Shown here: one piece after another, positions 8,035 through 36,040 of the stretch
Layout of the letters: each line of letters starts with the position of its first letter
Numbering within the stretch: position 1 is the stretch's first letter
Source of the DNA: Heterodontus francisci
Taxonomy: Eukaryota
Reading direction: 5' to 3'
Assembly: GCF_036365525.1 (NCBI RefSeq)
Contig: NC_090404.1
Location: 7,130,001 to 7,194,000, forward strand
DNA: 64,000 bases
Made by a program: the position numbers and the translations under genes
The notes under the pieces: generated by a model
What the model saw: the letters and a program-made list of their open reading frames with translations, nothing else
Database searches by the model: none
Told to the model about the DNA's origin: nothing

Positions 8035-8101
8035 AGGAAGTGACGTTGAACCAATAGGAGCCTCTGACGGAATTGTTCCGGTGCAGGATTGGCCTTTTAA
8101 A
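8035..8101 (+). promoter_or_regulatory. TCR V-type promoter: Ets GGAAG overlapping CRE-like AGTGACGTTG, CCAAT, TA-rich box
   Basis: aggaagtgacgttgaaccaat at 8035-8055 and ttttaaa at 8095-8101, upstream of leader ATG 8127/8133. Confidence 0.55.
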
Positions 8102-8126
8102 GAGACCGACAGGTTCGGTCTCGGCA

Positions 8127-8563
8127 ATGGCCATGCGGATATTCAGCGCCTGGGTTGTGTGTGCGGTGTTTATACTTGGTAAGGATGACTTCAATCATGT
8201 TGTCTCCAAATTACTGTGTTAATATTATTTCAGTAACGCCTTTTAATTCTCGATCTTGTCTTCGTCCTGAACGCATGTTACAGATCAAAATGATGGCGAT
8301 ACTGTTACTCAGTCCCAGTCTTCAGAAAGCGGGAGAGAAGGTGAAGCAGTGACTATAAGATGTACCTATAGCACAGGTATTAGTTATATTGGTACCGGCA
8401 ACAAGCAGAAAAAGACTCTCAGTTTGTTGTGTGGAGATGGTCTGGGGATACACGACAATTGAAAGGAGAAGATGTTGGAATTCGTTTCTCTGCTGAGCTC
8501 CAGACCGCGACTAAATTCACCAGTTTAACTATCTCGGGTCTGCAGCTGACTGACTCTGCCGTT
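8127..8563 (+). pseudogene. T-cell receptor alpha/delta-type V pseudogene 1 (leader 8127-8178, V exon 8284-8563)
   Basis: Leader MAMRIFSAWVVCAVFIL-G|gtaagg and acceptor ttacag. V reads DTVTQSQSSESGREGEAVTIRCTYSTGISY, frameshift, then YWYRQQAEKDSQFVVWRWSGDTRQLKGEDVGIRFSAELQTATKFTSLTISGLQLTDSAV. YYC and RSS are missing. Confidence 0.88.
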
Positions 8564-8954
8564 CTCCTTCCTTCACCATCAGTGGATTAAAGTCATATTG
8601 CCTTTATTGCCAGTCTCCAATTACCCTGAGATGAAGACTCCAGCCCCAAACGGATGATGTAGACTTTTAATAGCTTTGTGTCATGGACCCGCAAGACGGG
8701 CAATTGTAAAAGTGCAAGTAAAAATGGAAAATAGATGCCATTCTTAACACCACCAACCAGGTCCGGGGACTGAATACAAAAAATCACATGAGCCAATTCA
8801 ACACCTGACTAACATCATCTCACACTGATCATTGCACCCGTTCTCCTTCCTTCACCATCAGTGGATTAAAGTCAAACAACATTCTCCATGAAATCAGTGT
8901 GATACTTCACGAATATTGTACCGGGTGCTCTGCGTTTCAGATCTTCACATTCAA

Positions 8955-10095
8955 GAACACAAGAAATAGGAGCAGGAGTAGACCATGTGGCCCATCGAGC
9001 CTGCTCCGACATTCAATACAATCATGGTTGATCTTAGACTTCAACTCCACTTTCCTGTCCCTTGATTCCCTGAGAGACCAAAAAACTGCCTATCCCAGTC
9101 TAAAAATTATTCAACGATGGAGCATCCACAACCCTCTGGGGGAGAGAATTCCAAAGAATAACAACCCTTTGAATGAAGTAATTTCTCCTCATCTCAGTCC
9201 TAAATGATCGTTGCCTTCTCCTTAGACTGTGTCCCCGTGTTTTAGATTCCTCGATCCACGAATACAATCTCACAGTTCCTATCCTATTCAGCCCCGTCAG
9301 AATCTTGAATGTTTCAATGAGATCGCCTTTCATTCTTCTAAACTGCAGAGAACATAGGCCCAATGTACTCATTGTACTCTCATCATTAGAAAATCCCCTC
9401 AACCTAGGGACCAGTTTAGTGACCCTTCGCTGTACCGCCTCCAGTGCAAGTATATTCTTTCTTCCATGTGGAGACCAAAACTGCAGCCAGTATTCCAGGT
9501 GCGGTCTGACCAAACCATGTACAATTTTAGTAAGACTTCTTTATTCCTGTACTCCAATCCCCTTTCAATGAAGGCCAACATGCCATTTGCCTTCCTAATT
9601 GCTTGCTGTACCTGCATGTTAACTGTCTGTGTTCTTTGCACAAGTACACCCAAGTCTCTTTGAACATCAACACTTACAAGTTTCACACCTTGAAAAAAAT
9701 ATTCTGCTTTTCTATTCTCACCGCCAAAGCGAATAACTTCACACTTCCCTACATTATATTGCATCTGCAATCTTGTTGCCCGCTCACTTAACCCGTCTAT
9801 ATCTCTTTGCAGCCTCCCTGTATCCTCCCGACAGCGTACCTTTCCATCCATCTTTCTAGCCACAGCAAACTTAGATACATTATCCTCTGTTCCTTCATTT
9901 ATGTCATTGATAGATTGTAAATAGCTGAGGCCACAGAGCTTATCCTTGTGGCACTCCACTATTCACTGCCTGCCAACTTGAAAATGCCTTATTCATGGCC
10001 ACTCTTTGCTTCCTGTACATAAACCAATCCTCTATCCAGGCTAATATATTAACCGAAACGCAATAAGCCCTTGTCTTGCCTATTAACCTTTTGTT
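8955..10095 (-). mobile_element. CR1-like LINE 3' fragment
   Basis: INDINEG..SKFA, VRPHLEYWLQFWSP, GDLIETFKIL, KTRGHSL; typical 3' tail. Confidence 0.88.
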
Positions 10096-10141
10096 TGAAT
10101 ATTGAACTGCGGGGTCCCAGTGTGGGGATACTGCGGCCGTT

Positions 10142-10428
10142 ATGGAGTTTGGGCTTTTCGCTTTCTGGGCTCCTCTGGTATTGTTGTTTGATTATTATAT
10201 TTGTGTTTATTACTGCGACTTTCTGCACATTCCACTATTGATAGAACTGACGTACATTCATCTACCTCTAGTTCTATTAGCCTCTCTGTCTATCTATCTG
10301 CCTGTATTATTATATTTCCAACTATCCCACTCTTCCCCTGTTAGTCAATCAATTCATCTTCGGCTGCTTCCTTTGTCTCCGGACCAAGGTTTCCTTAAAA
10401 TGAGAAGCATATTATCTCTTCTACCTAC

Positions 10429-10485
<57 letters not shown>

Positions 10486-10872
10486 GATCTCTCTGTCTAT
10501 TATCTATTCGACGTTCTGCATCCACGGTTAACCAGGAATATTTTTTGCGGGTGTGAGTTATGGTGACTCTGTCAGACAGTGGCCAACAGAAGCCCAATAT
10601 TTGGAAGGAGTTTCGATGAGCATTAATTGTATCTATTCAAACTCCAATGTGAGCTATTCTGTGCAGCTTTATCGTCGGAGCCAGAACATGGCTTCCACTT
10701 TCGGAATTCAGGCATATTCCTATGGAATGTACGAAGTTAACGGTCATTCTGGAAACGTTCGCAATTCGAGCTTTTCTCATCGTGACTGGGCTGCAGCTCG
10801 TTGACAGCGCCCTGTGCTACTGTGTCTTGAACCTACACAGAAAAAGACCTCGGGATACTTCGTACAAATACC
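10142..10872 (+). pseudogene. T-cell receptor alpha/delta-type V pseudogene 2 with degenerate RSS
   Basis: Putative leader MEFGLFAFWAPLVLLF (10142-10190) and mutated acceptor ttttttgcgg. Exon 10551-10835 reads (G)VSYG-DSVRQWPTEAQYLEGVSMSINCIYSNSNVSYSVQLYRR.., frameshift, then FLIVTGLQLVDSALCYCVLNL. Heptamer CACAGAA 10836-10842, 21-bp spacer, nonamer ACAAATACC 10864-10872. Confidence 0.8.
10421..10485. repeat. (TATC)n microsatellite in the leader-V intron
   Basis: Direct read. Confidence 0.95.
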
Positions 10873-10899
10873 GTGTTCTGTAAGGTCTTTGGTAGGCGG

Positions 10900-13235
10900 T
10901 GAAGGAACCAATAGGAGGGGAAAATATACTTGCCCTTGTCCTAACCAATCTGTCTGCCGCACATGCATCTGTCCATGACAATATTTGTACGAGTGACCAC
11001 CGCACAGTCCTTGTGGAGACAAAGTCCCGTCTTCATCATGAGGATACCCTCCATCGTTGTGTGGCACGACCACCGTGTTAAATGAGATAGATTTCGAACA
11101 GACATAGCAATGCAAAACTGAGCATCCATGAGGCGCTGTGGGCCATCAGCAGCAGCAAAACTTTACAACTGCAATCTGTAACCTCATGGCCCAGCATAAT
11201 CCCCAGTCTATCATTGTGAATCATCAGCGAACATCCCCACTTCTGATCTTATGATTGAAGGAAAGCCAGGGAACCAACCCTGGCTCAATGAAGAGTGCAG
11301 AAGGGCAAGCCAGAAGCAGCACCAGGCATACCTCAAAATGAGGTGTCAACCTGCTGAAGCTGCAACACAGGACTACTTGCTTGCCAAACAGCGTAAGCAG
11401 CATGCGATAGACAGAGCTAAACGATCCCATAACCAACGGATATGATCTAAGCTCTGCAGTCCTGCCACATCCAGCCATGAATGGTGGTGGACAATTAAAC
11501 AACGAACCGAAAGAGGTGGCCACAAATATCCCCATCCTCAATGATGGGGGAGCACAGCACATCAGTGCAAAAGATAAGGCCAAATCAGTTGCAATAATCT
11601 TCAGCCAGAAGTGCCGAGTGGATGATCCATCTCAGCCTCCTCCTGAAGTCCCCAGCATCACAGATGCCAGACCGAAGGCACTGGATACTGCAAGGTGTAT
11701 GGGACCTGACAACGTCCCAGCAATTTTACTGACGACCTGTGCTCCAGAACTTGCTGCGCCCCTAGCCAAGCTGTTCCAGTACAACTACAACACTGGCATC
11801 TGCCCGGCAATGTGGAAAATTGCCCAGGCATGTCTGGTACTCTAAAAGCAGGCCAAATCCAACCCGGCCAATTACATCCGCCAAACCACCCCCCGCCCCC
11901 ACCCCACCTCCCCACAAGTCCACGTTCAATCATCAGTAAAGTGATGGAAGGTGCCGTCGAAAGTGCTATCGTGCAGCATTTACTTAGCAATAACCTGCTC
12001 AGTGACGCTACGTTTGGGTTCCGCCAGGGCCACTCAGGGGCCGACCTCTTTACAGCCTTGGTTCAAGCATAGAAAAAAGAGCTGAACGCAAGAGGTGAGG
12101 CGAGAGTGACTGCCCTTTACATCAAGGCAACATTTGACTGAGTATGACAGCAAGGAACCCTAGCAAAACTGAGGTCAATGGGAAACAGGGGAAAACTCTC
12201 CACTGGTTGGAGTCGTACCTAGCGCAAAGGAAGATGGTTGTCGTTGTTGGAGGTCAATCATCTCAGCTCCAGGACATCACTGCAGGCGTTCCTCAGGGTA
12301 ATGTCCTAGGCCCCACCATTTTCAGCTGCTTCATCAATGACCTTCCTTCAATCATAAGGTCGGAAGTGGGGATGTTTGCTGATGATTGCACAATGTCCAG
12401 CACCATTCATGACTCCTCAGATACTGAAGCAGTCCGTGTAGAAATGCAGCAAGACCTGGACAATATCCAGGCTCGGGCTGATAAGCAGCAAATAACATTC
12501 GTGCCACACAAGTACCAGGCAATGACCATCTCCAACAAGAGAGAATCTAGCCATCTCCCCTTGACATTCAATGGCGTTACCATCGCTGAATCCCCCACTG
12601 TCAACATCCTGAGGGTCACCATTGACCAGAAACTGAACTGGAGTAGCCATATAAGAGCTACAAGAGCAGGTCAGATGCGAGGAATCCTGCGGCAAGTAAC
12701 TCACCTCTTGACGCTCCAAAGCCTGTCCACTATCTACAAGGCACAAATCAGGAGTGTGATAGAATACTCTCCACTAGCCTGGATGGGTGCAGCTCCAACA
12801 ATACTCAAGAAGTTCGACACCATCCAAGACAAAGCAGCCCGCTTGATTGTCACCACATCCACAAACATTCACTCCCTCCACCACCGCACACAGTGGCAGC
12901 AGTGTGTACCACCTACAGGATGCACTGCAGCAGCGCACCAAGGCTCCTTCGACAGCACCTTCCAAACCCGCGGCCTCTACCATATAGAAAGACAAGAGCA
13001 GCAAATGGTTGGGAACAACACCACCTGCAAGTTCCCCTCCAAGCCACACACCATCCCGATTTGGAACTATATCACCATTCCTTCCCTGTCGCTGGGGGAA
13101 ATCCTGGAACTGCCTGCCTAACAGCACTGTGGGTGTCCCTACCCCACATGGAATGCAGCGATTCAAGAAGGCTACTCACCACCACCTTCTCAAGGGCAAT
13201 TAGCGACGCCCACATCCCATCAATGAAATAAAAAG
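10900..13235 (+). mobile_element. CR1/L2-group non-LTR retrotransposon, 5'-truncated, degraded RT
   Basis: MGPDNVPAILLTTCAPELAAPLAKLFQ, FGFRQGHS, GVPQGNVLGPTIFSCFINDL, MFADD; A-rich tail at ~13225. Confidence 0.88.
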
Positions 13236-13239
13236 CACA

Positions 13240-13725
13240 TTCATCTGCTTTATCCTCCTATTTGTATACTTACTTGCGCGTGATACGAAGAATAATCTGG
13301 AGATTACTACTTCTGAGCTCTGGCATGCTAATTTCCTATTTATCTCCCAAAATTCTGATGAAAAAGACCACATCCCCCTTTCTGCCGATGTCATTGGACC
13401 ACGACTGCTGGCTGTTTACGATCTCCCCATCAGGGTGCGCTGCAGACATTCGGTCACATGTTTGACCCTGGCACCAGGAAGGCAACACACCATCCTGGAT
13501 TCACATCTGCATCCACAGAACGCTGTTTATTCCCCTAACGATCGAATCTCCTACCCCTGTTGCTCTTGCAGTCTTCTTTTCGCCCTCTGCGCAGCTGAGC
13601 CAAGCGTGGTGCCATGGACGTGGATCTGGCTGCACTTCCCAGATGAACCAAAACTTTTATTAGTATTCAGAACTGAATACTGATTGGAGAGTGAGATGCA
13701 CTTGGGTTGCAGACACTTCTGCGCC
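13240..13725 (-). mobile_element. CR1 ORF1 (SGNH esterase-like) fragment
   Basis: Minus strand reads VGDSIVRG..MVCCLPGARVKHV; LSNQYSVL. Confidence 0.7.
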
Positions 13726-13739
13726 GTCTTTTGCTGGGC

Positions 13740-13965
13740 TCCCACGTCATTGAGGATGAGGGTGAATTTGGAACCTCTTTCTCCTGTTAGCTGTTTAATT
13801 GTCCAACATCGTTCATGACTGTATGTGGCAGGACTGTGGAGCTTTAATCTGATCCATTGGTCGTGGGACTACTTCGCTCTGTGTATCGCATGCTGCTTCC
13901 GCTGTTTAGCATGTATGTAGTTCTGTGTTGTCGCCTCCTCAGATTGACACCGCATTTTTAAGTCT
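13740..13965 (-). mobile_element. LINE fragment, reverse copy of ~11335-11550
   Basis: Reverse-complement similarity (tgtttaattgtcc..tgtggcaggactg..tatcgcatgctgctt). Confidence 0.75.
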
Positions 13966-15234
13966 ATGGAGACTAAAAACCCGGGCAGCTCCTGGCTGGA
14001 AGGAAGTTGGGTTTATACTCACTCTTGTAATGACTGGACCATTGAGGGCAGTGGGTCCCATACTTCACAGCGCCTGAGAAAGGCCCCAATCTGTGGCACG
14101 GGCCGCGTTACATTCTGAGACAACCCGCGACAAACGCGCACTTCCGCAAAAGGTTTAACCAAGGCTTTTTATATCCCCGCGTGGACAAACTTTCACTTTT
14201 ATGGATTAAGATCGAGTGGTATTTTAATGGAAAGTGAAGTCGGTTTTCTTTTCAATCAGTTGCTCTTTTATCTAAACGGCTAACATGGGCAGTATGTGAC
14301 ATCTCACAAACATGGCGGACGTCAGTTTGACTGGCAGTGGGTGACGTCACAATGCTTCCCCTCGTCACCGCACTGTGATTTGCTGTTTCCAACATTGATT
14401 CAGGGTCAGGGGTCACGAGCCATCTCCAGCCTCCTCTCAGCACCTGTGACCCCGAACTCAGAACTGTGACCCCGAAGGGTTTCGTCTCGACATCTTAAAG
14501 GGGGCGTCACCAGTGAGACTGGTGCCTGGAAAAAGGACAGAAAGACCGAGAGACACAGCGAGGGAGGCTAAAGCTAAATATAGCTTAGAGGGCAGGACGG
14601 CCCAGAATGATAGTGGTGGGGGAGGAGTGGGGGGAGAGATTGGAGCAGAGAAAGAGTTCAAGCATCAACGCCACCCAGTCCCAAATATAATTCTGAGCCG
14701 TTAAGAAGGGTCGTTAATTCTTCTCTGCCTGAATCTGATTTGATATTCAACCACAGGAGACCTCGCGCCTGAACATCAGGAGTGCAGAGAAAAATGCATT
14801 CAAAGGACAATGTCGGAAGATACTGGGGTCGGAACAGAAAGCTCTGGTGATGTTCCCGTGACCGGGAGGTACCGAAAGAATCTGATGAGACAGTGACGAA
14901 GGAGGAGAGAAATTTCAATTTGTGAAAGTATGAGGTTCACTGGCGGATCCCGGGGCTAATTTTTAGGGAGATGGTATAAGAGGGAATGGAGCAGGGAGAG
15001 AGGATCCCTGGTGTGATGTTCAGTGAGTTCAGGGAGATGGTATCAGATGGAATCGAGCAGAGAAGAGAGAAAGGTCATCAGAGAAACATGTGACAGAGGG
15101 GCAGGGGTAACAGGTATTGCAGAAAAGGTGAAGGCAGAAAGTTGGCGTGTGCATAACAGAAAAGTGGAGAGTGTATGTGAGACAGATTAGCTGGAGTGTG
15201 CGGGTTGTGTGAATAACAGAAAATGTGAAGACAG

Positions 15235-15630
15235 AGTCTCTGTATCTGATAGACCTCAGTCTCCTGGAATCATTCCTCCAATTTGTGCTCTCTTTTGTGT
15301 CAGATGTGCCCCAGGCTCTGGGAATCATTCCAGGGATTGTGCTCCCCTGTTTGTCAGATCGGCTTCAGGCTTTGGAAATTATTCCCAGGAATTTTCCTCC
15401 CCTGTTTGTCACATAGTTTTTGGGCATGGGAAATCATTACCCGGGGTCGTCCTCTCTGGTTCATTAGATAGGCCCAAGGTTCTGGCATCATTCTTAGAAT
15501 TTGTGCTCCTTGTCGTATCAGATAGACCCCGGCTCTTGAAATAATTCCCAGCATTTGTGTTCGATGGTATATTGTGTCAGATATGCACCAGTCTCCAGAA
15601 ATCATGCCAGGGTTTGTGCTCTCTCATGTG
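15235..15630. repeat. Degenerate ~54-bp tandem repeat (~7 units)
   Basis: Units such as cagatgtgccccaggctctgggaatcattccagggattgtgctcccctgtttgt. Confidence 0.75.
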
Positions 15631-16249: not shown

Positions 16250-16255
16250 TTTATT
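16250..16255 (-). promoter_or_regulatory. Poly(A) signal of membrane-form mu mRNA
   Basis: AATAAA on minus strand ~420 nt after the TM2 stop. Confidence 0.6.
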
Positions 16256-16674: not shown

Positions 16675-16683
16675 TCACTTGAC
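16675..16683 (-). CDS. IGHM: IgM heavy chain TM2 exon (VK*)
   Basis: ttttacag|GTC AAG TGA; completes the cytoplasmic KVK tail. Confidence 0.93.
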   Translation of the reverse strand, partial: VK

Positions 16684-16822
16684 CTGTAAAAGAGGGATAA
16701 AGGAGTGAAGCAGAGATTTCGTGGTTCGGGACATTCATCTCAAGGTTAAATTTATGAAACTTTTAGAGATTTGCGAAACAACTTCAGTTAAATTGAAGTG
16801 TGAGTGGATTGAATATTCTCAC

Positions 16823-16950
16823 CTTCACCAGAGTGACGGCAGCACTGTAGAAAATGCTCAAGAAGAACAGGATGATGAATGTGGAAGCGGTTGTCCAGAT
16901 GTTGCCGCTCTCTTCCTCATTGTCTTCAATCCAGATGTGGTCTGAGGAAT
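16823..16950 (-). CDS. IGHM: IgM heavy chain TM1 exon
   Basis: ag|(D)SSDHIWIEDNEEESGNIWTTASTFIILFFLSIFYSAAVTLVK|gtgaga; CART-type motif; 128 nt, phase 1 to 0. Confidence 0.95.
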
Positions 16951-17559
16951 CTACGCGGATATAGAGGAGGAAATATATTCAAATAGTTTATTAATCCAGC
17001 ATATATTTTGCATTCGAATGTCTCTTCCTTCAGCTATTATTGGTTTTCTAATTTAATTTTCAATGTGTGGCTATTAAGTTAATCATGCTCAGTAATCTAT
17101 CTCTGTTACCAACTCCACAATTATTCTTCCTTTATCATCGTCCTCCAGGCCTTATTGGAAAATGTGTCAGTTTTTTCTTCAGTGTCAGGCGCTTTTTTAT
17201 TTTAGATGCAGTTGCGGTTTTTCTTAAGGGATTATTATGGTGAAATATGAGATATCGAGGGAGGTTTACTGATCGATAACAATTATTTTGAAGATGGGTT
17301 CGGATATCTACTTATTTGGAGATTGTCAATTGTGCTGAGTAAGAGCTCGGATGCGAGTTCCAATCTTATTTGTATGTGATGAATGTCGCTTGAAAATCAT
17401 TTACATTCCTCAGTTTCTAAGTGAGAATTTTGCTTCGTTATCTTTTTAGGTCCACCGTGCATTCGGGAAGTTGTTGGAGATGGTGTCCATTCAATCAGTG
17501 CATTTGAATTCTACTTTCGTCAACAGCCTGGCGATTTTGTCTGCGCATTTAGTGTTTGT

Positions 17560-18480
17560 GCAAATGTGTACGAGTATCTTCCTTTGCATCACTCTCTGTT
17601 TCCATGTGTACGTGTGTGTGTGTGAGTGTTAATGTGTGGGAACAATGTAGTTGTTTGGGTGCCCATGTGTGTGTCAATGCGCGTGTTTATATGTTAATGC
17701 CTGTGTGTATGTGTCCATGTATGTTAGTGTGTTAATGTGCCAATGTGCATTGATTTGTGTAATCAAGTAGCCGTCTGTGTGTGTTTGGTGTGTGTGTATG
17801 TGTGTGTTTGTGGTGTGTATATGTGTGTGTGTAAGTCTATGTGAGTTGTGTTTCTTTATCCGTCTTTGTTTATGAGCGGTTGATGTTTATTTATGTCGGT
17901 GTCTGTGTCCCTATGCGTGTGTTAATATCTGTGTTTCTGTGTTGATGGATGTGTTTATGTTTCCCTGTGTTTCAATGTGTGTTTATATGTCCATGTGTGT
18001 GTGCTAATGTGTTATTTATGCCTGCTTGTGTCCCCATGAGTGTGCGAATGTATGTTTTTGTTGATGTCTACGTTTATGTATTAATGCATATATTAATGTG
18101 TGTTTATGTGAGCATGTGTGCGAATGTATGTGCTGATGTGCGCGCTTGTGTATCCATGTTAATATTGGTGTCTATTTGTTTGTGAGTGTGTTAATGTGTT
18201 AGTGTGTCTGTTTATCTGTGTGCATATGTACGCGAGTCTGTTAATATGCGAGTGTATGTGTCCATGTATGTGTTAATGTGTGTGATGGTGTGTGCTTTGA
18301 TGTCTCGGTTTCTGCTTTCGTGAGACTGCACTAACGTGTGCATTTATGTTCGTGTTTGCGTATGTGACTGTGGGAATCTTGCTTTCAGCGTTTGGGTTTG
18401 TTTGTGTATGTAGATGCATATGTGTGTTTGTACATGTGCGTGTGTTTATGTGTTTGTTTATGTCCGTGTGCCTGTACATT
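17560..18480. repeat. Degenerate (TG)n low-complexity tract in the Cmu4-TM1 intron
   Basis: Direct read. Confidence 0.9.
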
Positions 18481-19519
18481 TTTATTATTAAACGAAGTTT
18501 CAGAGAGTACAAATAACCGCGTCTAGCCCTGACGGTGTGCACTGTAGAGAATATTCTTTATCGTTCTGTGCGTAAATCTATTCTGTGCGAGATGCAATAT
18601 GACATCAGCTGGATGAATGCAACAATGAAAATGATGGGCCTCGGCACAACAGGAATAGTGGATGATTAAATCACCAGTTAGATTTAGACTATTGGAATTT
18701 AATCTGTCAGGGAACGTGGCCAACAGGAAAATGTTTTAAGATATCATGTTGCATAAAGATATATTTTGCAATATATTTCCCACGTGGAATGTTTAAACCT
18801 TCGTACAGTGAACTGGAAGCCGACTTCGAACTGATGGCAATTGAATCCGATCATGAAGAGCAGTTGGCTTCCAATCTCTCTGCAGGGGGAGTGGGAGTAT
18901 AGTGGGTTAACAAATGCCCTTACTCCTTTCTCTGTCGAGGAATTGGTGAGGAGTGGGGGGCCTATTACAGTAGGTCCACAATTGCCTTCCTTCTCTATTG
19001 GTGAAGTGGAGTAACAGTGGATTAACAATTACCCTTTCCCCCTCTCTGTTTAGGATGTGGATCTACAGTAGATTAATAAATTGTACTTTCCCCTCTTTCT
19101 GATGGAGAATTGTGAGTGCAGATCGTACTTGTGTGTGGCCTTCGGTTCAGTTCCCACAGCATGTGATGCTGAAACTGCAAACTGACCTCAATACCGAAGG
19201 GGTGGACAACACGAGAAGCAGGAACACCGATTACTAAATGCACTTCGTTTGTTCGTTAGAAAAGGGAAATTTTCAGATATCCCCAGACAAGGCAGGAGGA
19301 AAGCTAAGTTGCTGGTGTTACCTTCCGGAATCCTGTAATGAATCAGTTTTCCTCTGTCGCTAACCTGTGATATCTGAGTTGGGAGCACTGATTGCACAAG
19401 ACTTGGGCCCGAGACCTGCAAATATCCCACTTTAGATGAATAGATCTACCCTGAGAAAATGTGGGAAGCAGAATTAATTGAGCGCTTGTGTATTTGAATC
19501 GTGATTGGAGGAAAATGTC

Positions 19520-19535
19520 TTTATTGATTTTTATT
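19520..19535 (-). promoter_or_regulatory. Tandem poly(A) signals for secretory mu mRNA
   Basis: AATAAA at 19530-19535 and 19520-19525, 30-45 nt after the secretory stop. Confidence 0.75.
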
Positions 19536-19563: not shown

Positions 19564-19955
19564 TCATTGACATGAATTGACAGTGTCCAACAGTGCAAGG
19601 GAAATGTTCACAAAACTCGGTTTACCGCTGGATTTATTAACTGTTCTGTTGATGATCTTCAAGGGGATCGCTTCATGTCCCACCACACAGGAGTAAGAAG
19701 CGCCGCTGGCCCACTCCTCCGCTGCAATGGATAACAGGCTGTAGATGAAGTAGGAGCTATTGTCGTTCTCTGCCATCACCTCGGTGTTCTTGTAGTTGCC
19801 AGGATTCACCGACTTGTCATTGACGGTCCACTTGACGAAGATCTCTCGGGGGGAGAAACCTCTCACTAAGCAGGTGAGGGAGAGGAACCTCTGAGCGGAG
19901 ACATCGTCTGCCGGGGGCAGGAGGACAGATACGGACGGTTCCCGCAGATCTTTAT
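19564..19955 (-). CDS. IGHM: IgM Cmu4 exon plus secretory tailpiece
   Basis: cag|(N)[74 protein letters not shown]. Internal donor G|GTAAA at 19626/19625 for TM splicing; NIS glycosylation site and penultimate Cys. Confidence 0.97.
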
Positions 19956-20457: not shown

Positions 20458-20766
20458 TTTTTTCCTTGTGGATGAAATCTCTGAGAGGAGTCGGCAGATC
20501 CTGATGGCTCACCACACAGTAGAAATCAACCCCACTCAGCCAGGATTGTGCCGAGATGTCTACGGTGCTGATCACACTGTCGGAATCCTCTCCGGGTTGC
20601 ACGGCAATCTCAGATTTCAAAGGCTTCTGTTCTTGTGTCCAGGACACGTTGACACCATAAGGAGCATTAGACACGACGCAGGTTAAGGTCACCGTCGCCT
20701 CCAGTAAGACCTGTTCTATTGATGGTGGCAGTAGTTTAATTACTGGATCATTGCAGGAACAAGGAA
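20458..20766 (-). CDS. IGHM: IgM Cmu3 exon
   Basis: cag|(V)[45 protein letters not shown]|gtgagc; 309 nt, phase 1-1. Confidence 0.96.
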
Positions 20767-22519: not shown

Positions 22520-24495
22520 CAATGAGATGTAAGACTGAGGATTGGGAGTTTTAGAAACCAGCAAAGGACAACCAAAAAGTTGATAAAAAGGGGAAAAAAT
22601 AGAATTTGAGAGTAAACTAGCCATCAATATAAAAATAGTTTGGAAGATCTTTTATAAGAACATAAAAAGGAAAAGAGAAGCCAAAGTAGACGTTGGTCCC
22701 TGAGAGGCAGAGACAGGAGAAATCATCATGGGGAATGAGGAAATGGCAGAGGCATTGAACAAATATTTTGTGTCTGTCTTCACAGTAGAAGACACAAGTT
22801 CCATACCAGAAACAGGCAGTAATCTAGGTGCTAAAAAGAGTGAGAAAATTAAGGATATTGATATCAGCCGAGAAAAAGTATTGGAGAAACTTGACAGAGT
22901 AAAATCTGACAAGTTCCCAGGACCTGATGGCTTACATCCTGGGGTTCTAAAAGAGATAACTGCAGAGATATTGGATGTGATGGCTATGACTTTCCAGAAT
23001 TCCTCAGATTCAAGAATGGTCCCATCAGCTTGGATGTTATGGCAAATGTTATGCCGCTTTTCAAGAAAGGAGGTAGAGAGAAAACAAGGAACTACAATCC
23101 AGTTAGCCTGACGTCAGTCGTTGGAAAGATGCTGGAAACTATTATTAAAGAAGTCTTGACATTACACTTGGAAAAGCATAGTATGATTAGAACAAGTCAG
23201 CGTGGTGTTACTAAAGGGAGATACTGTTTAACAAATGTATTAGAGATTTCTGAGGATGTAACTAGTAGGGCAGATAAAGGGGAACGAGTAGATGCAGTAT
23301 ACCTGGCCTTTCAAAAGGCATTCAGTAAGGTACCACATAAAAGAATAATATGCAAGGTCAGGGCACATGGTGCTGGAGGTAGTATATCAGCGCGGACAAA
23401 GGATTGGTTAACAGACAGGAAGCAGAGAGTGGGCATAAATGAGGCATTTTTAAGTTGGAAGGCAGTGAATAGTGGGGTGCCGCAAGGATCAGTGCTGGTG
23501 TCTCAGCTATTTACACTCTATATTAATGACTTGGAAGAAAAGACAGAGAGTAATATATCTAAGTTTGCTGATGATACAAAGTTCAGTGGAAAGGTAAGCT
23601 GTGGGGAGGATATATGGAGAGGCTGCAAAGAGATATAGACAGGTTAAGTGAGTGGGCAGCAAGTTGGCAAATGGAGTATTATATAGGGAGTTCTGAAATT
23701 GTTCACTTTGGTCGTAAAAATAGAAAAGCCAAATATTTTGGAAGGAGTGAAAATGGTAAGTGTTAATGTTCCAAGAGACTTGGGGGTACTCGTACAAGGA
23801 ACACACAAAGTTACCATGCAAGTGCATCCGGCTATTAGGAAGGTAAATGGCATGTTGGCCTTTTGTGCAAGGAGATTGGAGTACAGGAATAAAGAAGTCT
23901 TACCAAAATTGTACAGGGCTTTGGTGAGATCGCAAATGGAATACTGTGTGCAGTTTTGGCCTTCACATTGAAGAAAGGATGTCCTTGCACTTGAGGCAGT
24001 GCTGTGAAGATTTACTAAATTGGCCGCATTGGTTGATGGGCTTGTCCGGTGATGAGAGACTGAGTAAATTGGGCCGATATTCTCTGGCGTTTAGAAGAAT
24101 GAAAGGCAATCTAATTGAGACACACGAGATTCTGAAAGGGCTTGATCGGGTAGAAGCTGAGAGATTGTTCCCATTGGTCAGGCAATCGAAAACACGGGGA
24201 AGCAGCCTCAGGATAAGGAGCCAATAATTCAGGACTGAGATGAGAAGAAATTACTGCACTCAAAGAATTGTGAATCTTTGGAATTCTCCACCACAGAGGG
24301 TTGTGGATGCTCCATCATTGAATACATTTAAGGCTGGCATAGATAGATGTCTGGTCTCGCGGGTAATCAAGGGATATGGGGAGCGGGCAGGAAAGTGGAA
24401 TTGAAGCCCAAGAACAGCCATGATCGTATTGAATGGCGAAGCAGGCTCGATGGGCCATATGGTCTACTTCTGATCCTATTTCTTGTGTTCTTGTA
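22520..24495 (+). mobile_element. CR1-like LINE (degraded RT and 3' end) in the Cmu2-Cmu3 intron
   Basis: EMAEALNKYF, PGPDGLHP, NYNPVSLTSVVGKMLE, SGVPQGSVL, SKFADD. Confidence 0.92.
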
Positions 24496-24710: not shown

Positions 24711-25028
24711 CCTGAGATCCGGTGATGTTTCGGCTTTGGGTGACCGCTTGATGGGAGACCTGGCAGGTATAGACCGTGTTGGTGAACCATTCCCCTGCGG
24801 GGACTGTCAGCCGACTGGTCGCTGAGAAGTTTCCGTTCACTTCACAGGCGGGAGAGGTGACGAAGCCCGAATCCATGGATTGTCCATCCTTCAACCAACT
24901 CACGGTTATTGACTCTGGATGGAAATCGATGATTGAACACAAGACAGTTGCAAATCTGCTGCTTGTGATTTCTTCACTGGAAGTCTGGGTGAGGAGAACA
25001 GTTGGATGGACGATGTCGCCTTGACAAT
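24711..25028 (-). CDS. IGHM: IgM Cmu2 exon
   Basis: aag|(D)[64 protein letters not shown]|gtaaga; 318 nt. Confidence 0.96.
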
Positions 25029-25231: not shown

Positions 25232-25528
25232 CTGGAATTTCCTTGATCCAGACTGACTCTCCGCGTCGAACCTCGCAGTAGATTTTGCTGCTTCCCACCT
25301 CTGACTCGGTGATGGTTAACTGGCTGCTCAGGGTGTAGGTTCCCTTCTTGTTCAGCACTGACGGGTAAGTCTTCAGTCCAGTGGTGATCGTCTCTTGATC
25401 TTTCTTCCAGGAAACGCTGGTGATTTGGGGGATGTAGTCCATCGCCAAACAGCCGTAGGCAACGGAGCCACCGGTGTTGGGTTGTTCACAGGAGCACAGA
25501 CCATAAAGTGTCGGGGGAGACGGTGTCG
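25232..25528 (-). CDS. IGHM: IgM Cmu1 exon
   Basis: cag|(A)[45 protein letters not shown]|gttagt; 297 nt. Confidence 0.96.
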
Positions 25529-29349: not shown

Positions 29350-29760
29350 TCCTTGGAACACTGGGGAAAACACTCTCAGGTCAGGTACAGGAAAGATAAG
29401 CGATCGAGTAAAGACCCCTTTGTACGGCCCTGTCATGAGCTGCAAGGTCAGACATCGCAAGTGTTATATTCGGAGGAAAGCCGCCTCTACACTACACTGT
29501 CGCTCTGGGTCAGGTACAGCACTAGTTTAATATTTTAAAAAATAGTTCCCTCTACGCTGTCCCATCAAATACATCCAGGACAGGTTGAACCAGGTTTAGG
29601 TACAGAGTAATTTCTCCCTCTACCCTTGCCTCATCAAACGGATCCAGGATAGTTACAGTATGCATTAAGTATGCAGTAAAGCTTCCCCTACATTGCCGAA
29701 TCAAACACTCCCAAGGGAGGTACATTGCTGATTACAAACTGACCAAATATCCTTCTACAG
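29350..29760. repeat. ~60-bp minisatellite, degenerate
   Basis: catcaaacactccc..caggtacag..gagtaaag units. Confidence 0.7.
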
Positions 29761-30196
29761 TCTGTCTGCCGTGTCTCTGAAGTGTTATCTCTGATTGTCA
29801 CAGACTGGAATACTGATCTCATTGCTGAGGCGCCTCATCAAACTTAAAGTCAAAACTTTAGGTTTCTCACAGATACAAGCTTCTTAAATAAATGGATCAA
29901 GTTGCAGGAGAACGAATCAGACTGTTTACCACCTGTAGGGAGGGCTCCTCGTCCCGACACAGTAAGCAGGCGCACAGAAACTGAACAGGCACAAACGATG
30001 CAACAATCGGGCTCTCAGCAGATAGATCTGTTCAATCCGTCAATTTCAATGAAGCTGTTTGATTCTAATTTATCAATTGTCAAATTGTGACCACTCCAAG
30101 TCTGGAAGCTCTTTGAAATTAAACTGATAGTCATTTCCAAAACTCCCTTCGACCTCCAAATGTTTCTCCCTGTCTGTTTGCAATCTTAAAAACGTG

Positions 30197-31105
30197 TATG
30201 AAAATTCTGAAGGAGAGAATCTATCTCCACTTGGCGAGGCAAAATTTGATTAGGTTATGGTCAGCATGGCGATGTCAAATGGAATTTAACGCTGAAAAGT
30301 GTGAGGTGATACACTTTGGAAGGAGTAATGTGACACGGAAGTATTCAATGAATGACCTGACACTGGGAAGTTCTGAGGAATAAAGGGATCTTGGCGTGTT
30401 TGTCCATAGAACTCTGAAGGAAGAAGGGCAGGTTAATAGGGTGGTGAAAAAGGCATATGGGACACTTGCCTTTATCAATCGAGGCATAGATTACAAAAGC
30501 AGGGAGGTCATGTTGGAGTTGTACAGAACTTTGGTAAGGCCACACTGGAGTACTGTGTGCAATTCTGGTCGCCACATTATAGGAAGGATGTGATTGCACT
30601 GGAGGGGGTGCAGAGGCGATTCACCAGGATGTTGCCTGGGATAGAACATTTAAGCTATGGAGAGAGGTTGGATCGGCTTGGGTTATTTTCGCTGGAGCAG
30701 AGAAGACTGAGGGGTGACCTGATCGAGGTGTACAAGATTATGAGGGGCATGGACAGGGTGTAAAGGGAGCATCTGTTACCCTTAGTTGAAGGGTCCATTA
30801 CGAGGGGACAGTAGTTAAAGGTGAGGGGTGGGAGGTTTAAGGGGGATCTGAGGAAGAACTTACTTTTTTACCCAGAGGATGGTGACGTTCTGGAATGCCA
30901 CTGCCTGGGTGGGTTGTCGAGGCCGGTTGCCTCACATCCTTTAGAAAGTACCTGGATGAGCATTTGGCACGTCACAACATTCAAGGCGATGGGCCACGTG
31001 CTGGCAAATGGGATTAGGTAGACAAATCAGGTGCCATTAATGCATCGGTGCAGACTCAATGGGCCGAATGGCCTCTTCTGTACTGTATTATTCTGTGATT
31101 CTGTG
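30197..31105 (+). mobile_element. CR1-like LINE 3' fragment in the J-Cmu1 intron
   Basis: [45 protein letters not shown]; tail gggccgaatggcctcttctgtactgtattattctgtgattctg. Confidence 0.9.
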
Positions 31106-34076
31106 AGAAAGTTTCCCTTAAAATGAGTACATCAAAACAATCCACATTCAGGAAACTTTGATGTCGGTGACAGGAACTCAGTGACAGATAAAGAATTTAG
31201 CAAATCAGGAGACATTTAATTGCAAACAGATTACCCACTGGTTTGATACAATTTCAGAACTAAATGTTACCAAAAAATCATTGAAGCAATACACAAAGTT
31301 AATTAAAATCAGCGGTGAAACCTTATCGAGCTGAGAATCGCTGAGTAAGAAATGTATTGTTCTCTAAATTATTTTTGGACATCATTCAAAATTCTCTCCG
31401 GCCCTTGCTATTTTGCAATCATTGGAATCCTGGGAGGTCATTTATGTTTACTGAATTAGCGCTATTATATTCTAGGCTAATATTTAGGTTACCTGATTTT
31501 ACACTGTAATTTTGAGCATTAGTTAATATTAATTCAAGACCAATTTCTGTGAAATTATCGGATTTTAATTAAATCAATATGACATTTAATCAATATTAAA
31601 TAATAGACGTCATATTGATTGATGAAAACATTCAGACAAATATATTACTTAATCGAATCACAGTTCAATAATTTAAAATGAAAAATAATTTCTACTTCGG
31701 CCCTGCTTTCAATCTATAAACTTGGAAACTGCGCATGTATCTGAATGTGTTGATATATCATAGACTCTGTCTAATCTCAGCGAGTATTTCACACGATGGA
31801 TTTAAGAGTGGAATATTTTAAATAGTTTCAAGCCAGGCCAGGGTCACATCTCACTAACTGTTCATGGGCTGTAACATCCGCTGTTCATGAAAGCAGGACT
31901 CTGGTGTTTAAATATTGTCATAAATCTTAATCATATAAGAAAAAAATCAAAAACATCCGGACAGTTTGCGATCAGGAACTGTGCTGCCTCTATTTAATCA
32001 GACAATGTTTTTATATTTTATTCTCGTAATGCACACAATCCCCGTAAATTAATTGGTAAATATATTCTGGTTTTTTTTATTGAAAGAAGCTCCAAAATGA
32101 TCACTGTAAAATTGGACGAGAATAATTCTTTCAGATCATCTGCGACATTTCAAACTTAATGAACAAATGTAGCCCAGATTTTGCTGATCAATTTAATATT
32201 TCATAAGAATTAAGCATAACTCTCAGGTATAATCTGTTCTTTGTCTATAATTCTATCCTGTGTGCAGCATAACTGTGGGAGACAGGATGTTGTTACTGAA
32301 TTAAAAACTAACATTAACCTTTTGTAATTAATTGAATCTGCTTGAATTTCAAGGGGTTATTTGTTTGCCTCCAGCCTTACGCAGTTTGCAAGTTTCTTCA
32401 ATTTAAACAAAATCATATCTGCAATTCTTTGACTGCCAACAACTTCCTGTCTCAGGAAAATTGTTAATATTAGATTAGTGATAATTATCTCACTATCCAA
32501 CAACAAATGATATTTAAGGAAGAACATGGTTTGGGCTGCACGCAAAGAATGTAATAACCGGACAGAGATATTACACTGACAAACTGCAATTTACAACTCC
32601 TATTGAAGTTATAAGTAAAGACAAGCTGTAATTCACTTGTTTTAATCAGAAATATAACAATTAATTCAAAATCGTTCATCAAATTGAACACAGCACTAGA
32701 ATAAGTACACTCTTATTGAAATAATTTCAAGCATAAATTAAAATTGTCTGCAGCCCATAACATTTCTGGTCACGATAATTGTGCGCATGGCACACCAGAA
32801 CTGTGAAAGTCGATTAATGAATAATGAATCGATGTTAATATTAAAGCATATTTGGTTTATATGATGAGATATTGCCGCATTAAAACTGTTTGAATTACAT
32901 TAACTTTACTCTCCAATCTGCAAACCTTCTAATTATGCAGTTTGTAATTGCAGTAACATTTAACGGACTTTCACGTCACAAACCGTGGCTTAATAGTTTA
33001 ACCTGTAATTATCAGTTAAATTTTTAAAATGCCATGAAATATCTTAAAATATTATTTCTCATTTCTTTCAAACAGTTTTAAACACGTAGAACGTTTCAAT
33101 TCGATCAGAAAACCTGCAGCCGCTCGCTCGAGATTAAACAATGTAGAAACACCAAACTGTTTCACAAATTTTACTTATTCAAAGTAACACACTCTCTTCA
33201 GCAGATAAACACCAAATCACATCACTGAGGAACTGAATCCCACCACAGTACATTTCATGGAGAAGCAGCTTAATTCTACAAATACTTCCAGCAGAATGAA
33301 ATGTAATATTGCAAAAAAAAATCTCAATGCAGAATCCACCGAGCCCGCCTGTACCTGACCTAACTAATTATTAAAATGATCAGATATATGAAACAATGGT
33401 CGCAGAATTGTTAGTAGACAGAACATGTTTAATAAATTAATATGAGTCCATGGCATAATCCATTGATGTTGGCTGATATCACTGCAGTATAATAACGAAG
33501 ATTATATGAATTTAAATCTGACCAAAGCTGCAAGTTTGTTATTTATGTAGCTTTTAATTACATCAAAATTTATTGTATTACATGTGAGCATTCCTGAGCA
33601 GTAGATTGATAGATGGCAATTTAATTACCACAAATATGAATCAAAATATTGTAAGACTATTTTTAACCGTTGAAGCTTTCTGCCTATACTTTTATTTCAA
33701 ACATATTTAAACACTTATTGTTTGCGCTAGACTAGAAAACCTGCAGTGACTAAATGTCAGCAAGATAAATCCTTGCAGAAATGTCGAACAGTTGAACAAC
33801 AGTTCGGTATTTAAAGTAGCACAGACACACCATCTCATCAACAAATTAACACCAAATCACATCAAACAGTAACTGAATCCTTCAACAGCACAGCCTGTGG
33901 AGAAGCCGTTAAATTCTCTAATCCCTTTGCAGCAAAATCACATGAAACATTGCACCAAATCTCAATACAGAATCCACCGACTCCACATTTCAGTGAACTA
34001 AGGTATCGTTAAAATAAACAGAAATATAAATAAAAACACGAATAAAACAGTTACTGAATAAATGCATGTTTCTTAC

Positions 34077-34124
34077 CTGCAGTCACCGTCACCATGGTCC
34101 CTTGTCCCCAGTAGCCCATGGCGT
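34077..34124 (-). CDS. IGHJ: IgH J segment (AMGYWGQGTMVTVTA)
   Basis: WGQG motif; donor G|gtaaga at 34076. Confidence 0.96.
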
Positions 34125-34163
34125 CACAGTGTTACATTCCCTGGGCTGGGTCACACAATAACC
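34125..34163 (-). other. JH 23-RSS
   Basis: Plus strand CACAGTG 34125-34131, 23-bp spacer, ACAATAACC 34155-34163. Confidence 0.95.
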
Positions 34164-34489
34164 GGCTCTGCACAGAATAGAGAGAAATCCATCATTATTT
34201 TAAATATCCATACCCCAGAGGCAAAATAAAATCTTGATGGTTCTTTGTAAAATTATATCTGCATTACTGATTTTTTTCACTCTTTATAAATTTCCCTGAT
34301 GTTTTATATTTCACACAGTAACATATCAGCAATTATTGAAATCACCAACTGATGAATGAGTAATTAATCAGTTTATCCATAATAAACCGTGCAAGGAGGA
34401 CAGTGCTGGACACAAACAGTACTTCACTGTATATACAGTTGGATTGTAAAAGCGAGCACTGACCCAGACTCGTCAATTAGTGCTGAGGG

Positions 34490-34558
34490 AGTTTTTGTTT
34501 TGACAGTAACTGCTGTGCCACCCAGAATATCACAGTGAACCACACCGTGTCAAATACT
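34490..34558 (-). other. IGHD: IgH D2 segment ATATTCTGGGTGG (34518-34530) with 12/12 RSS
   Basis: 5' RSS: CACAGTG 34531-34537, 12 bp, TCAAATACT. 3' RSS: CACAGCA, 12 bp, ACAAAAACT (to 34490). Confidence 0.93.
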
Positions 34559-34871
34559 GCAGTGGACTGTTAACTGTAAAATACAGAGATTAAATTCCAC
34601 AGCGTCCTCAAAAACCTGATTCCGACTCCCCTAAGAGTATATCGGTGAGATAATTCAGTTTATACCCGTCATTATATTTATAAAGGGGATTTGAATACTT
34701 CTGAAGCATCTGTACTGATTTAGCGTGACAGTCAGCACTAATTACGCAGGAGACTTTTATACATTTTTACAAATCTATATTATATTTCCCCAGTATTTTT
34801 ATTTAATCCTCATTGTTTACGGACCATCTCCCGTGTTAGTGATCACTGGTTGGTGCAAACTCCATGTATGG

Positions 34872-34952
34872 GGTTTTTGTGTGAGGAATTCGCTCTGTAC
34901 AGCACCGTGACCCACTGTAGTACCCACAGTGACACGAACCTGCACAAATACT
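34872..34952 (-). other. IGHD: IgH D1 segment GGTACTACAGTGGGT (34910-34924) with 12/22 RSS
   Basis: 5' RSS: CACAGTG 34925-34931, 12 bp, ACAAATACT. 3' RSS: CACGGTG, 22 bp, ACAAAAACC (to 34872). Confidence 0.95.
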
Positions 34953-35333
34953 GCACTCACTCTGTTAAGTACTGCCTCTCACCATTCGCTTCATCTCGAA
35001 ATCCACTTCTGATCTAGTTCGGAATATATCCAAAAGTTTACACCACGCAGTAGGAAGTGACTCCAAGTAACTCGCTCCAGGTCACAGTCACATTAAAACT
35101 AGCATCTTATCCAGATCTGCAATTGCCGATACTGTTAACATTAAAATCAGCACAGCCAAAATTACTCATCAGTACTTCGATCAGTGTCTTAGATTTGAAC
35201 CATTGAATTTTCACTGTGCTAGTTGTGTAAGAGACGGTCTCTGGTCTTTTTCTGAACACTGCCGTTAATATTGTATTTAATACAATTACTGACCGTTAGA
35301 TTATGATGGAAGTTGTTGAATTCCCTCTCCATG

Positions 35334-35372
35334 TGTTATTGTACGGGTCCAGCCCTGGTTCTTCTCATTGTG
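35334..35372 (-). other. VH 23-RSS
   Basis: CACAATG 35372-35366, 23-bp spacer, ACAATAACA 35342-35334. Confidence 0.93.
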
Positions 35373-35677
35373 ATCTCTGGCACAGTAATAAATGGCGGTG
35401 TCTTCGGTCTTCAGTTTCTTCATCTCCAAAGCGAAGATGTTTTTTGAAGTGTCTTTGGATGCAGTAAATCGATCTTTAATCTCTGGGGCGTAAGCATTGT
35501 CGGATGAACTATAGTAGTAAACTATCCACTCCAGCCCCTTCCCGGGAAACTGTCGGATCCAGTACATGTTGTAGCTGCTAACAGTGAATCCGCTGGTTTT
35601 ACAGGTCAGTCTCAGGGAGCCTCCTGGTTTCCCGGTCTCTGCCTCTGGCTGAGTCAACACGACATCCGAATGGACAC
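35373..35677 (-). CDS. IGHV: IgH V exon (IgM-type VH)
   Basis: cag|(R)[61 protein letters not shown]; open frame. Confidence 0.98.
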
Positions 35678-35805
35678 CTGTCAAAAATATTTTTAAAAAC
35701 CCGAGGATTAATCCTGGTGAAAGTATTCCTGACTCGTAACATTCCAGAGAGAGACTAACACTGAGACGGGAACAGTGAGAGACTCAGACAATAAAAACTA
35801 CTCAC

Positions 35806-35851
35806 GGGATAAAAAAACCAGTAACAGACTGAGAGAAATCGCCGACCTCAT
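35806..35851 (-). CDS. IGHV: VH leader exon MRSAISLSLLLVFLS
   Basis: 46 nt, phase-1 donor C|gtgag; 128-nt intron to the V exon. Confidence 0.93.
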
Positions 35852-35940
35852 CCTTCTGGCAATTCAGGGAAAATGGTTCTGGTAAGAACTCACTGAGCAA
35901 ACCCACTCCCGGACTGTTGTATTGCGGTCCCAGTGACCTG

Positions 35941-36040
35941 CATTTAAATACCTGGCAGAAGGAGGCGAGGTTCCAGGCTCCGCCCATAGATTCCCTGATA
36001 GAGGCGGTTACTGGATCCACGTCCCACCTTCCACATCACT
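35941..36040 (-). promoter_or_regulatory. VH promoter (TATA-like box; no Ig octamer seen)
   Basis: TATTTAAATG 35950-35941; AGTGATGTGG 36040-36031 and GGGACGTGG upstream. Confidence 0.55.

Follow-up and report, generated by a model that had tools for sequence, protein, structure and literature searches.

The window, i.e. the whole 64-kb stretch of shark DNA analysed here, contains a complete germline IgM minicluster on its minus strand (35851-16675, with exon borders and frames read in the window) and two broken V exons on its plus strand, here called V1 and V2, which converge with the cluster tail to tail. The cluster comprises the following elements:

35806..35851, minus strand: VH leader exon (MRSAISLSLLLVFLS plus 1 nt), split leader
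35334..35677, minus strand: VH exon (35677-35373), V-set, with 23-RSS (35372-35334)
34872..34952, minus strand: D1 (34924-34910) with a 12-nt RSS 5' and a 22-nt RSS 3'
34490..34558, minus strand: D2 (34530-34518) with 12-nt and 12-nt RSSs
34077..34163, minus strand: JH (AMGYWGQGTMVTVTA; 34124-34077) with 23-RSS (34163-34125)
25232..25528, minus strand: Cmu1 exon, Pfam C1-set, in frame
24711..25028, minus strand: Cmu2 exon, Pfam C1-set, in frame
20458..20766, minus strand: Cmu3 exon, Pfam C1-set, in frame
19564..19955, minus strand: Cmu4 with secretory tail, C1-set; AATAAA at 19535 and 19525
16675..16950, minus strand: TM1 (16950-16823) and TM2 (16683-16675), the latter coding VK and then a stop

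A preliminary description of this DNA had listed a complete minus-strand cluster of leader, V, two D, J, Cmu1-4, secretory and transmembrane parts, and each of these elements was found, with exact borders. Its further statement that the cluster looks fully functional holds in the structural sense: the frames are open without any internal stop, every acceptor is AG and every donor GT, including that of JH at 34076, and the RSS spacers are canonical, with 23 nt at VH, 12 and 22 nt at D1, 12 and 12 nt at D2 and 23 nt at JH. The RSS of VH consists of CACAATG, 23 nt and ACAATAACA, that of JH of a nonamer at 34163-34155 and a heptamer at 34131-34125. Leader and VH exon together form an open reading frame of 117 aa, in which CDR1 reads SYNMY and CDR2 YYYSSSDNA. 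The VH exon matches the Pfam V-set domain with E 3.3e-18, is 78% identical to HV01_HETFR and clusters in our tree with the IgH V of cartilaginous and bony fish (support 100/100). Near the leader a TATA-like TATTTAA is found at 35950; the exact Ig octamer ATGCAAAT, sought upstream of the leader, is absent. In the constant part, Pfam C1-set matches were obtained for all four Cmu exons (E 1e-9 to 3e-16), an internal donor for TM splicing lies in Cmu4 after 19626, and the first AATAAA downstream of TM2 is located at 16255. The exons were searched singly and joined solely for counting reading frames; in this joined state both the secreted form (J to Cmu4) and the J-to-TM2 form are open, each with one terminal stop.

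This organization is that of the classical shark IgM cluster as known from horn and nurse shark, which likewise possesses one VH with a split leader, RSS spacers of 23, 12 and 22/23, 12 and 12, and 23 nt, four Cmu exons, a Cys as the penultimate residue of the secretory tail, and a TM1 followed by a TM2 of two codons, all within ~19 kb. Structural differences from the classical type are nil; a LINE fragment adds to the length of the Cmu2-Cmu3 intron, and the intron between J and Cmu1 measures 8.5 kb. By analogy with shark IgM clusters, RAG would join the cluster's own VH, D1, D2 and JH under the 12/23 rule, and the transcript would be spliced to its own Cmu1-4 and then to either the secretory tail or TM1-TM2.

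The two V exons on the plus strand, together with their immediate surroundings, show the following features:

8127..8178, plus strand: V1 leader exon (MAMRIFSAWVVCAVFIL plus 1 nt), donor GTAAGG
8284..8563, plus strand: V1 V exon, pseudogene of TCR alpha/delta type as judged by similarity, frameshift at ~8388-8389 in CDR1
8559-8595 and 8838-8874, plus strand: two identical 37-nt direct repeats, the first beginning at the end of the V1 similarity
10142..10189, plus strand: putative V2 leader (MEFGLFAFWAPLVLLF), exon border uncertain
10536..10832, plus strand: V2 V exon, strongly diverged, probable TCR alpha/delta-like pseudogene, 1-nt frameshift at 10778 in FR3
10836..10872, plus strand: V2 RSS remnant (CACAGAA, 21-nt spacer, nonamer ACAAATACC), degenerate
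11263..13121, plus strand: LINE-type reverse transcriptase fragments (RVT_1, E 2.2e-12 for 12144-13121)

The two V pseudogenes had been placed at 8127-8563 and 10142-10872 before; these coordinates are right, and both exons are broken. The similarity of V1 ends after '...LTDSAV', with Cys104 and the RSS gone, and the 37-nt repeats mark an insertion or rearrangement that deleted its 3' end. In V2, Trp41 is replaced by Leu (VQLYRR) and CYC stands in place of YYC. Both are regarded as pseudogenes because V1 combines a frameshift with the loss of Cys104, and V2 a frameshift with the change of Trp41 to Leu; neither is able to join any rearrangement product.

The affinities of V1 are seen in a match from a phmmer search of a library of 1.84 billion proteins, a 297-aa V-J-C chain model of the sawshark Pristiophorus japonicus (P0001, UniRef100_UPI00398F1F4D), which was found with 72% identity and E 3.3e-16, a value that in a library of this size lies far beyond chance. 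At full length, P0001 itself has TCR delta chains as its best PDB matches (E 1e-35 to 1e-37). V1 agrees with P0001 in the length class of its CDR1 as well as in the leader (80% identity over 15 aa), FR1, FR2 and FR3; the identity is 76% for the FR1-CDR1 part and 72% for FR2-FR3. P0001, however, is an intact V-J-C model, whereas in V1 the frame is shifted and both the YYC end and the RSS are missing. Nearly all of the 30 proteins that match V1 at E<=1e-3 are single-V or V-J-C proteins of TCR alpha/delta-like character, one being an unrelated dinoflagellate protein, and no recognisable Ig heavy or light chain occurs among them. Likewise, V1 scores 123.7 bits to TCR-type V and 22.5 bits to the best VH, where, as for V2 and for the tree, the pseudogene was translated through its frameshift with an X at the break.

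Alternatively, the relics could derive not from TCR V but from exons of Ig light-chain, NAR or non-rearranging V-set type that have decayed. The FR2-FR3 piece of V1 alone, which has no Pfam match at E<=0.1, is indeed matched first by lambda-type light chains in the mammal-dominated PDB, and V1 meets unspecific, generic V-set clusters in the ESM Atlas. Against such an origin stand the 74% identity (90 aligned columns) between the V1 V exon and a V that is joined to C-delta in P0001, and the nine TCR alpha chains that rank above the first light chain when FR1 of V1 is compared with the PDB. Judged by its sequence, V1 is a TCR alpha/delta-type V of the family used with C-delta. Automatic annotation has given two of the 30 matching proteins the names 'immunoglobulin iota chain-like' and 'VPREB'.

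For V2 the evidence is weaker than for V1, with a Pfam V-set match of E 0.017 and scores of 30.8 bits to TCR-type V versus 9.3 to VH. A search for homologous proteins with the V2 piece yielded zero candidates, its putative leader is without a relative in the set of proteins compared, and the ESM Atlas gave unrelated clusters only. An origin outside the TCR V genes is favoured by the best PDB match of V2, which is pIgR (E 0.062), but 21 of its 27 weak PDB matches (E near 0.08) are TCR alpha, despite the great preponderance of antibodies over TCRs in that database. Moreover, the spacer between heptamer and nonamer of V2 is 21 nt, not 12, and neither relic is followed by a J or C1-set exon, unlike in a shark IgL cluster. 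The tree that had been proposed as a check of the relics answers part of the question: it sets VH-type apart from TCR alpha/delta-type V, with V2 on a long branch (1.99), and it separates these two types only, as V sequences of Ig light chains, NAR and TCR beta/gamma are not part of it, which leaves some room for a non-TCR ancestry. Taken together, we regard such an ancestry of the relics as very improbable; V2 is probably a TCR alpha/delta-type V as well, far more diverged than V1. The earlier assignment of both relics to the TCR type is therefore upheld for V1 by the P0001 match and, for V2, as a probable one by the weak PDB matches and the difference in bits.

The distance from the V2 nonamer (10872) to the AATAAA after TM2 (16255) is 5.4 kb, and from the end of V1 (8563) it is 7.7 kb, in accordance with the tail-to-tail spacing of about 5-8 kb given previously. 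Reverse transcriptase and endonuclease fragments surround the relics, and the whole stretch from V2 to where the IgM cluster ends on its 3' side is filled with retrotransposon fragments. Such an interval, with 5 kb rich in retrotransposons, is one in which a mis-assembly over repeats might have joined the IgM cluster to the V relics artificially. However, the interval is free of N, as had been noted before, the sole N run of the window lying elsewhere (37635-37762); DNA contigs of the same sample match the germline V-D-D-J stretch; the same juxtaposition has been published for four other elasmobranchs (PMC12227049); and in P0003, a gene model from a bamboo shark, a TCR-type V and a VH-type V are fused. 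An assembly artefact is hence hardly credible, and in the assembly the IgH cluster is contiguous with the TCR alpha/delta-type V exons on one chromosome.

Linkage of this kind is not without precedent. A linkage of TCR alpha/delta with the IgM, IgW and IgNAR clusters of elasmobranchs has been shown (Flajnik et al., Sci Adv 2025; PMC12227049), TCR alpha/delta-type V exons have been reported between IgH clusters, and this proximity has been proposed as an explanation of VH-to-D-delta rearrangement (PMC12227049). The ideas of linkage and proximity put forward in the preliminary description were thus already published in 2025 (PMC12227049), and its interpretation is only partly new. Like the antigen receptor complex, the present locus combines an IgH minicluster that keeps its V(D)JC with TCR alpha/delta-type V exons beside it. 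Unlike that complex, which includes TCR D-J-C, PSMB5, IgW and IgNAR, the window holds one cluster and two pseudogene V. Neither a TCR D, J or C segment nor a further V was found in a search across the 64 kb, and an intact TCR V is likewise absent from them. Of the suggestion that the cluster lies in or next to a TCR alpha/delta V array, it can accordingly be maintained that the cluster adjoins V1 and probably V2; the placement within an array is weak because only these two dead relics speak for it in the window, where TCR D, J, C and intact V are lacking.

In our opinion the locus is likely to be an ordinary intact germline IgM minicluster beside dead remnants of TCR-type V, with an adjacency that is historical and does not constitute a working Ig-TCR unit. 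The cluster would sit in a region where elasmobranch IgH clusters interleave with TCR alpha/delta-type V (the 'antigen receptor complex'), and V1 and V2 would be dead remnants of a field of TCR-type V, scattered amid retrotransposon debris and devoid of a function of their own. Their neighbourhood may then be a by-product of regional history, i.e. of segmental duplication and decay. Interleaving of Ig and TCR genes bears on the divergence of the Ig and TCR loci, on the origin of VH-TCR delta chimeras and on the action of AID on shark TCR. To these questions the window adds an example at base level, an annotated intact IgM cluster 5.4 kb away from decayed TCR-type V. It shows that dead relics make up at least part of the interspersed TCR-type V exons, and functional readings of such adjacency should be tempered.

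A functional reading would make the locus a substrate in cis: in T cells, RAG would join this VH with its 23-RSS to a TCR D-delta with a 12-RSS on the same chromosome, leading to VH-D-J-delta-C-delta chains, so that the IgM cluster doubles as a donor of TCR delta V. The VH 23-RSS is intact and near consensus, and rearrangements of shark VH to TCR delta are documented and ascribed to proximity (PMC12227049). Yet the 64 kb contain zero TCR D, J or C, the cluster is oriented away from the plus-strand relics, and an inversion over about 1 Mb would be required if the TCR D-J-C were oriented like these. The nurse shark TAILV, or TCR delta-associated Ig-like V, offers a comparison, as it also places an Ig heavy-chain-type V physically near TCR V segments. 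TAILV, however, are solitary VH-like segments within the TCR delta locus that use TCR D-J-C, while the VH described here is followed, over a span of 19 kb, by a D1, D2, JH and Cmu of its own and groups with IgM VH. We therefore consider the use of this VH in cis by TCR delta unlikely. Quite unlikely, too, is the more specific version in which the IgM cluster is situated deep in a field of TCR delta / NAR-TCR V of >10 Mb and its VH is joined inversionally to a D-delta ~1 Mb off in T cells. If inversional VH-D-delta joining were true, IgM clusters would serve the B-cell and the gamma-delta T-cell repertoires with one germline V.

Finally, RNA-like runs from the same individual speak for ordinary IgM use of this VH family, whose VDJ-Cmu transcripts are abundant in them. 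In these runs V is joined to J in more than 100 distinct ways, with 12-35 nucleotides at the junction that include D1- and D2-like stretches, and the DNA run contained no joint of this kind. In the RNA contigs JH (34077) is spliced to a Cmu1 sequence, and every contig leaving JH, within the short length of these contigs, runs into Cmu1, which again argues against a use of the VH by TCR delta and agrees with an ordinary IgM minicluster. The leader and the Cmu1 joined to V/J in the RNA contigs each carry 2 mismatches to those of this cluster; therefore, the bulk of the transcripts would come from a near-identical paralogue, and the RNA data were rejected as proof of expression of this very cluster. 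One L-V splice of lower depth (35806 to 35677, run X2) fits the present copy and is the sole one to do so. As a minor observation, marks specific to this IgM cluster are a T-run in the leader and CCG ACA at the start of Cmu1.

A complete germline minicluster for the IgM heavy chain extends from 35851 to 16675 on the minus strand of the window, and two broken V segments (relics), here called V1 and V2, lie beside it on the plus strand.

Features of the IgM minicluster and of the neighbouring V relics (window positions; RSS, recombination signal)
35851-35806 (-): leader exon, donor GTGAGT; leader ends in CTGGTTTTTTTATCCC
35677-35373 (-): VH exon, Pfam V-set
3' of VH exon (-): VH RSS, CACAATG, 23-nt spacer, ACAATAACA
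34924-34910 (-): D1, RSS spacers of 12 nt (5' side) and 22 nt (3' side)
34530-34518 (-): D2, RSS spacers of 12 nt on both sides
34124-34077 (-): JH, AMGYWGQGTMVTVTA; RSS with 23-nt spacer, GT donor
25528-25232 (-): Cmu1, Pfam C1-set; starts with CCCCCGACACTTT
25028-24711 (-): Cmu2, Pfam C1-set
20766-20458 (-): Cmu3, Pfam C1-set
19955-19564 (-): Cmu4, Pfam C1-set, carries the secretory tail
19535, 19525 (-): AATAAA signals 3' of the secreted end
16950-16823 (-): TM1, spliced from an internal Cmu4 donor after 19626
16683-16675 (-): TM2, 2 codons; membrane form ends in ...TTASTFIILFFLSIFYSAAVTLVKVK
16255 (-): AATAAA signal 3' of the TM end
8127-8178 (+): V1 leader, followed by a phase-1 intron
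from 8284 (+): V1 V exon; similarity ends after ...LTISGLQLTDSAV at 8563
from 10142 (+): putative V2 leader, hydrophobic
about 10536-10832 (+): V2 V exon, 1-nt frameshift at 10778
3' of V2 V exon (+): V2 RSS remnant, CACAGAA, 21-nt spacer, ACAAATACC

The complete L-V-D-D-J-Cmu1-4-Sec-TM organization claimed in the preliminary description is borne out by open frames, AG/GT borders, RSSs and Pfam domains. Leader and VH encode 117 aa in open frame, with the terminus ...YYCARD. The borders are AG/GT throughout Cmu1-Cmu4, whose exon lengths preserve the frame, and the frame from J through Cmu4 comprises 453 residues and one stop, with the 20-residue secretory tail at its end. The RSS layout is the canonical one of shark IgM, and all cis elements needed by an autonomous IgM cluster are intact in this copy. 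By analogy with established shark IgH clusters, RAG rearrangement would take place within the cluster, and splicing would then join the rearranged product to the Cmu exons of the same cluster. The Cmu2-Cmu3 intron (3.9 kb) is lengthened by an antisense LINE reverse-transcriptase fragment (22728-24227, +; RVT_1 E 9.5e-18). Long, imperfect CA/CACG-rich low-complexity tracts with His/Thr-rich pseudo-ORFs occur at 17500-18550 and 52600-53050, one of them between Cmu4 and TM1.

Expression was assessed in three small runs that behave like RNA (X1, X2, X7) and share their source sample with the assembly, and in a genomic run (X3). RNA-like depth reaches about 10^6 on leader, V and J and is near zero in between. 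These runs contain more than 100 distinct joints from V end to J start, with 12-35 inserted nt including D1- and D2-like stretches, and in their contigs the leader-V intron is spliced out and J at 34077 is joined to a Cmu1 start. Since such diverse joints and splices are present in the RNA-like runs, and none of the joints occurs in X3, the VH/JH family is, at the family level, rearranged and highly expressed as IgM. The Cmu1 start joined to JH in the RNA contigs reads CCCCCAACCCTTT against CCCCCGACACTTT in the window cluster, and the consensus leader end CTGGTTTTCTTATCCC against CTGGTTTTTTTATCCC, each pair differing at 2 positions. Because of these mismatches, the dominant transcripts point mainly to a near-identical paralogue of the IgM cluster, identical to it in the V and J stretches, as the main expressed copy. 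Between V and D1, all covering runs, DNA and RNA-like, have an extra A after 35142 and G instead of T at 35248, which reflects allelic variation or, alternatively, a minor error in the assembly consensus.

A comparison of the FR2-FR3 piece of V1 with 1.84 billion representative proteins yielded 30 matches at E<=1e-3, none of them a recognisable Ig chain; two are automatically named 'immunoglobulin iota chain-like' and 'VPREB'. The top match (E 3.3e-16) is a V-J-C chain of 297 aa from the sawshark Pristiophorus japonicus (P0001, a TCR delta chain model), to which identity is 80% in the leader, 76% in FR1-CDR1 and 72% in FR2-FR3. In PDB, full-length P0001 matches human TCR delta chains best (E 1e-35 to 1e-37), with TCR alpha chains trailing at about 1e-22, and we read its transmembrane stretch as delta-like. 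Further matches of V1 include P0019 (282 aa, with a C region of the same kind as P0001), a 'TCR alpha V region' from a frog and numerous unnamed single-V models (chimaera, bamboo shark, horn shark, skate); the pattern GDSVTQ ... LQLSDSAVYYCAL is common to all of these. When the FR1 piece of V1 is compared with PDB, nine TCR alpha chains rank ahead of the first light chain. Sequence similarity thus identifies V1, with high confidence, as a TCR alpha/delta-family V pseudogene.

V2 is far more diverged: VQLYRR replaces the WYRQ motif and CYC replaces YYC, its PDB matches are weak (E about 0.06-1) though mostly TCR alpha, and its branch length in our tree is 1.99. The bit scores of V2 are 30.8 with TCR-type V sequences and 9.3 with VH. 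The earlier assignment of the relics to TCR V held in this tree, where VH-type sequences were the only Ig V included: the window's VH falls in a VH clade with 100/100 support, and the TCR-type clade comprises V1 (beside the sawshark delta V) and V2. An identity of either relic as VH or TAILV (TCR delta-associated Ig-like V) is therefore rejected; the tree, built without light-chain, NAR and TCR beta or gamma V sequences, excludes these two identities only. With moderate confidence, V2 is likewise identified as a TCR alpha/delta-family V pseudogene. Its closest BLASTP relative is P0027 / P0038 (Callorhinchus milii LOC103191216; residues 52-120, 40.6% over 69 aa), whose V fragment also lacks Trp41 (LLFRHRRG vs VQLYRRSQ in V2); this common loss could mark an ancient, atypical family of V genes, or decay that ran in parallel.

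Both relics are convergent with the IgM gene, and as assembled V2 and V1 lie 5.4 and 7.7 kb from its TM polyadenylation signal, in agreement with the 5-8 kb first described. The absence of an N gap between relics and cluster also stands, since the sole N run of the window (128 N, 37635-37762) lies 1.8 kb 5' of the IgM leader. Fragments of reverse transcriptase and endonuclease are present in the DNA between relics and cluster. Self-tBLASTN and tBLASTN with 45 V/TCR proteins detected neither another V nor a TCR constant exon anywhere in the 64-kb window. The V1 frame shifts by 2 nt within CDR1 (about 8388-8389), and V1 is without Cys104 and RSS because its similarity stops at 8563, where a 37-nt sequence begins that has a second copy 279 nt downstream. 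The V2 leader intron contains a (CTAT)n microsatellite (10404-10511). As neither relic can yield a protein and the RSS is lost (V1) or degraded (V2), both are inert remnants of a V field in which IgH clusters are dispersed.

If TCR delta were to use the window VH in cis, the joining would conform to the 12/23 rule, and an inversion of about 1 Mb would be needed should the TCR D-J-C segments be oriented like the relics. The observation of cluster and relics is confirmed, with clean anatomy, but the phenomenon is already described. Flajnik et al. (PMC12227049) found that IgM, IgW and IgNAR clusters of elasmobranchs are in linkage with TCR alpha/delta, and that V exons of TCR alpha/delta type occur among the IgH clusters; according to them, proximity of IgH clusters and TCR alpha/delta readily explains VH-to-D-delta rearrangements, the same inference as in the preliminary description. 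The window example supplies only pseudogene TCR-type V segments. An independent hint of Ig/TCR V juxtaposition comes from Chiloscyllium punctatum GCC21065 (P0003), in which a TCR alpha/delta-type V (…LQLSDAAVYYCAYGD) is fused to a VH-type V (EVILSQPETETG…), so that TCR-type and VH-type V segments are adjacent in the bamboo shark too. P0002, a horn-shark 'uncharacterized protein', begins with TCR-type V domains; its C-terminal tail matches transposon sequence of the window at 11263-11503 (+) and 13793-13976 (-) with 46-69% identity, and the same repeat family accompanies TCR-type V segments in that shark.
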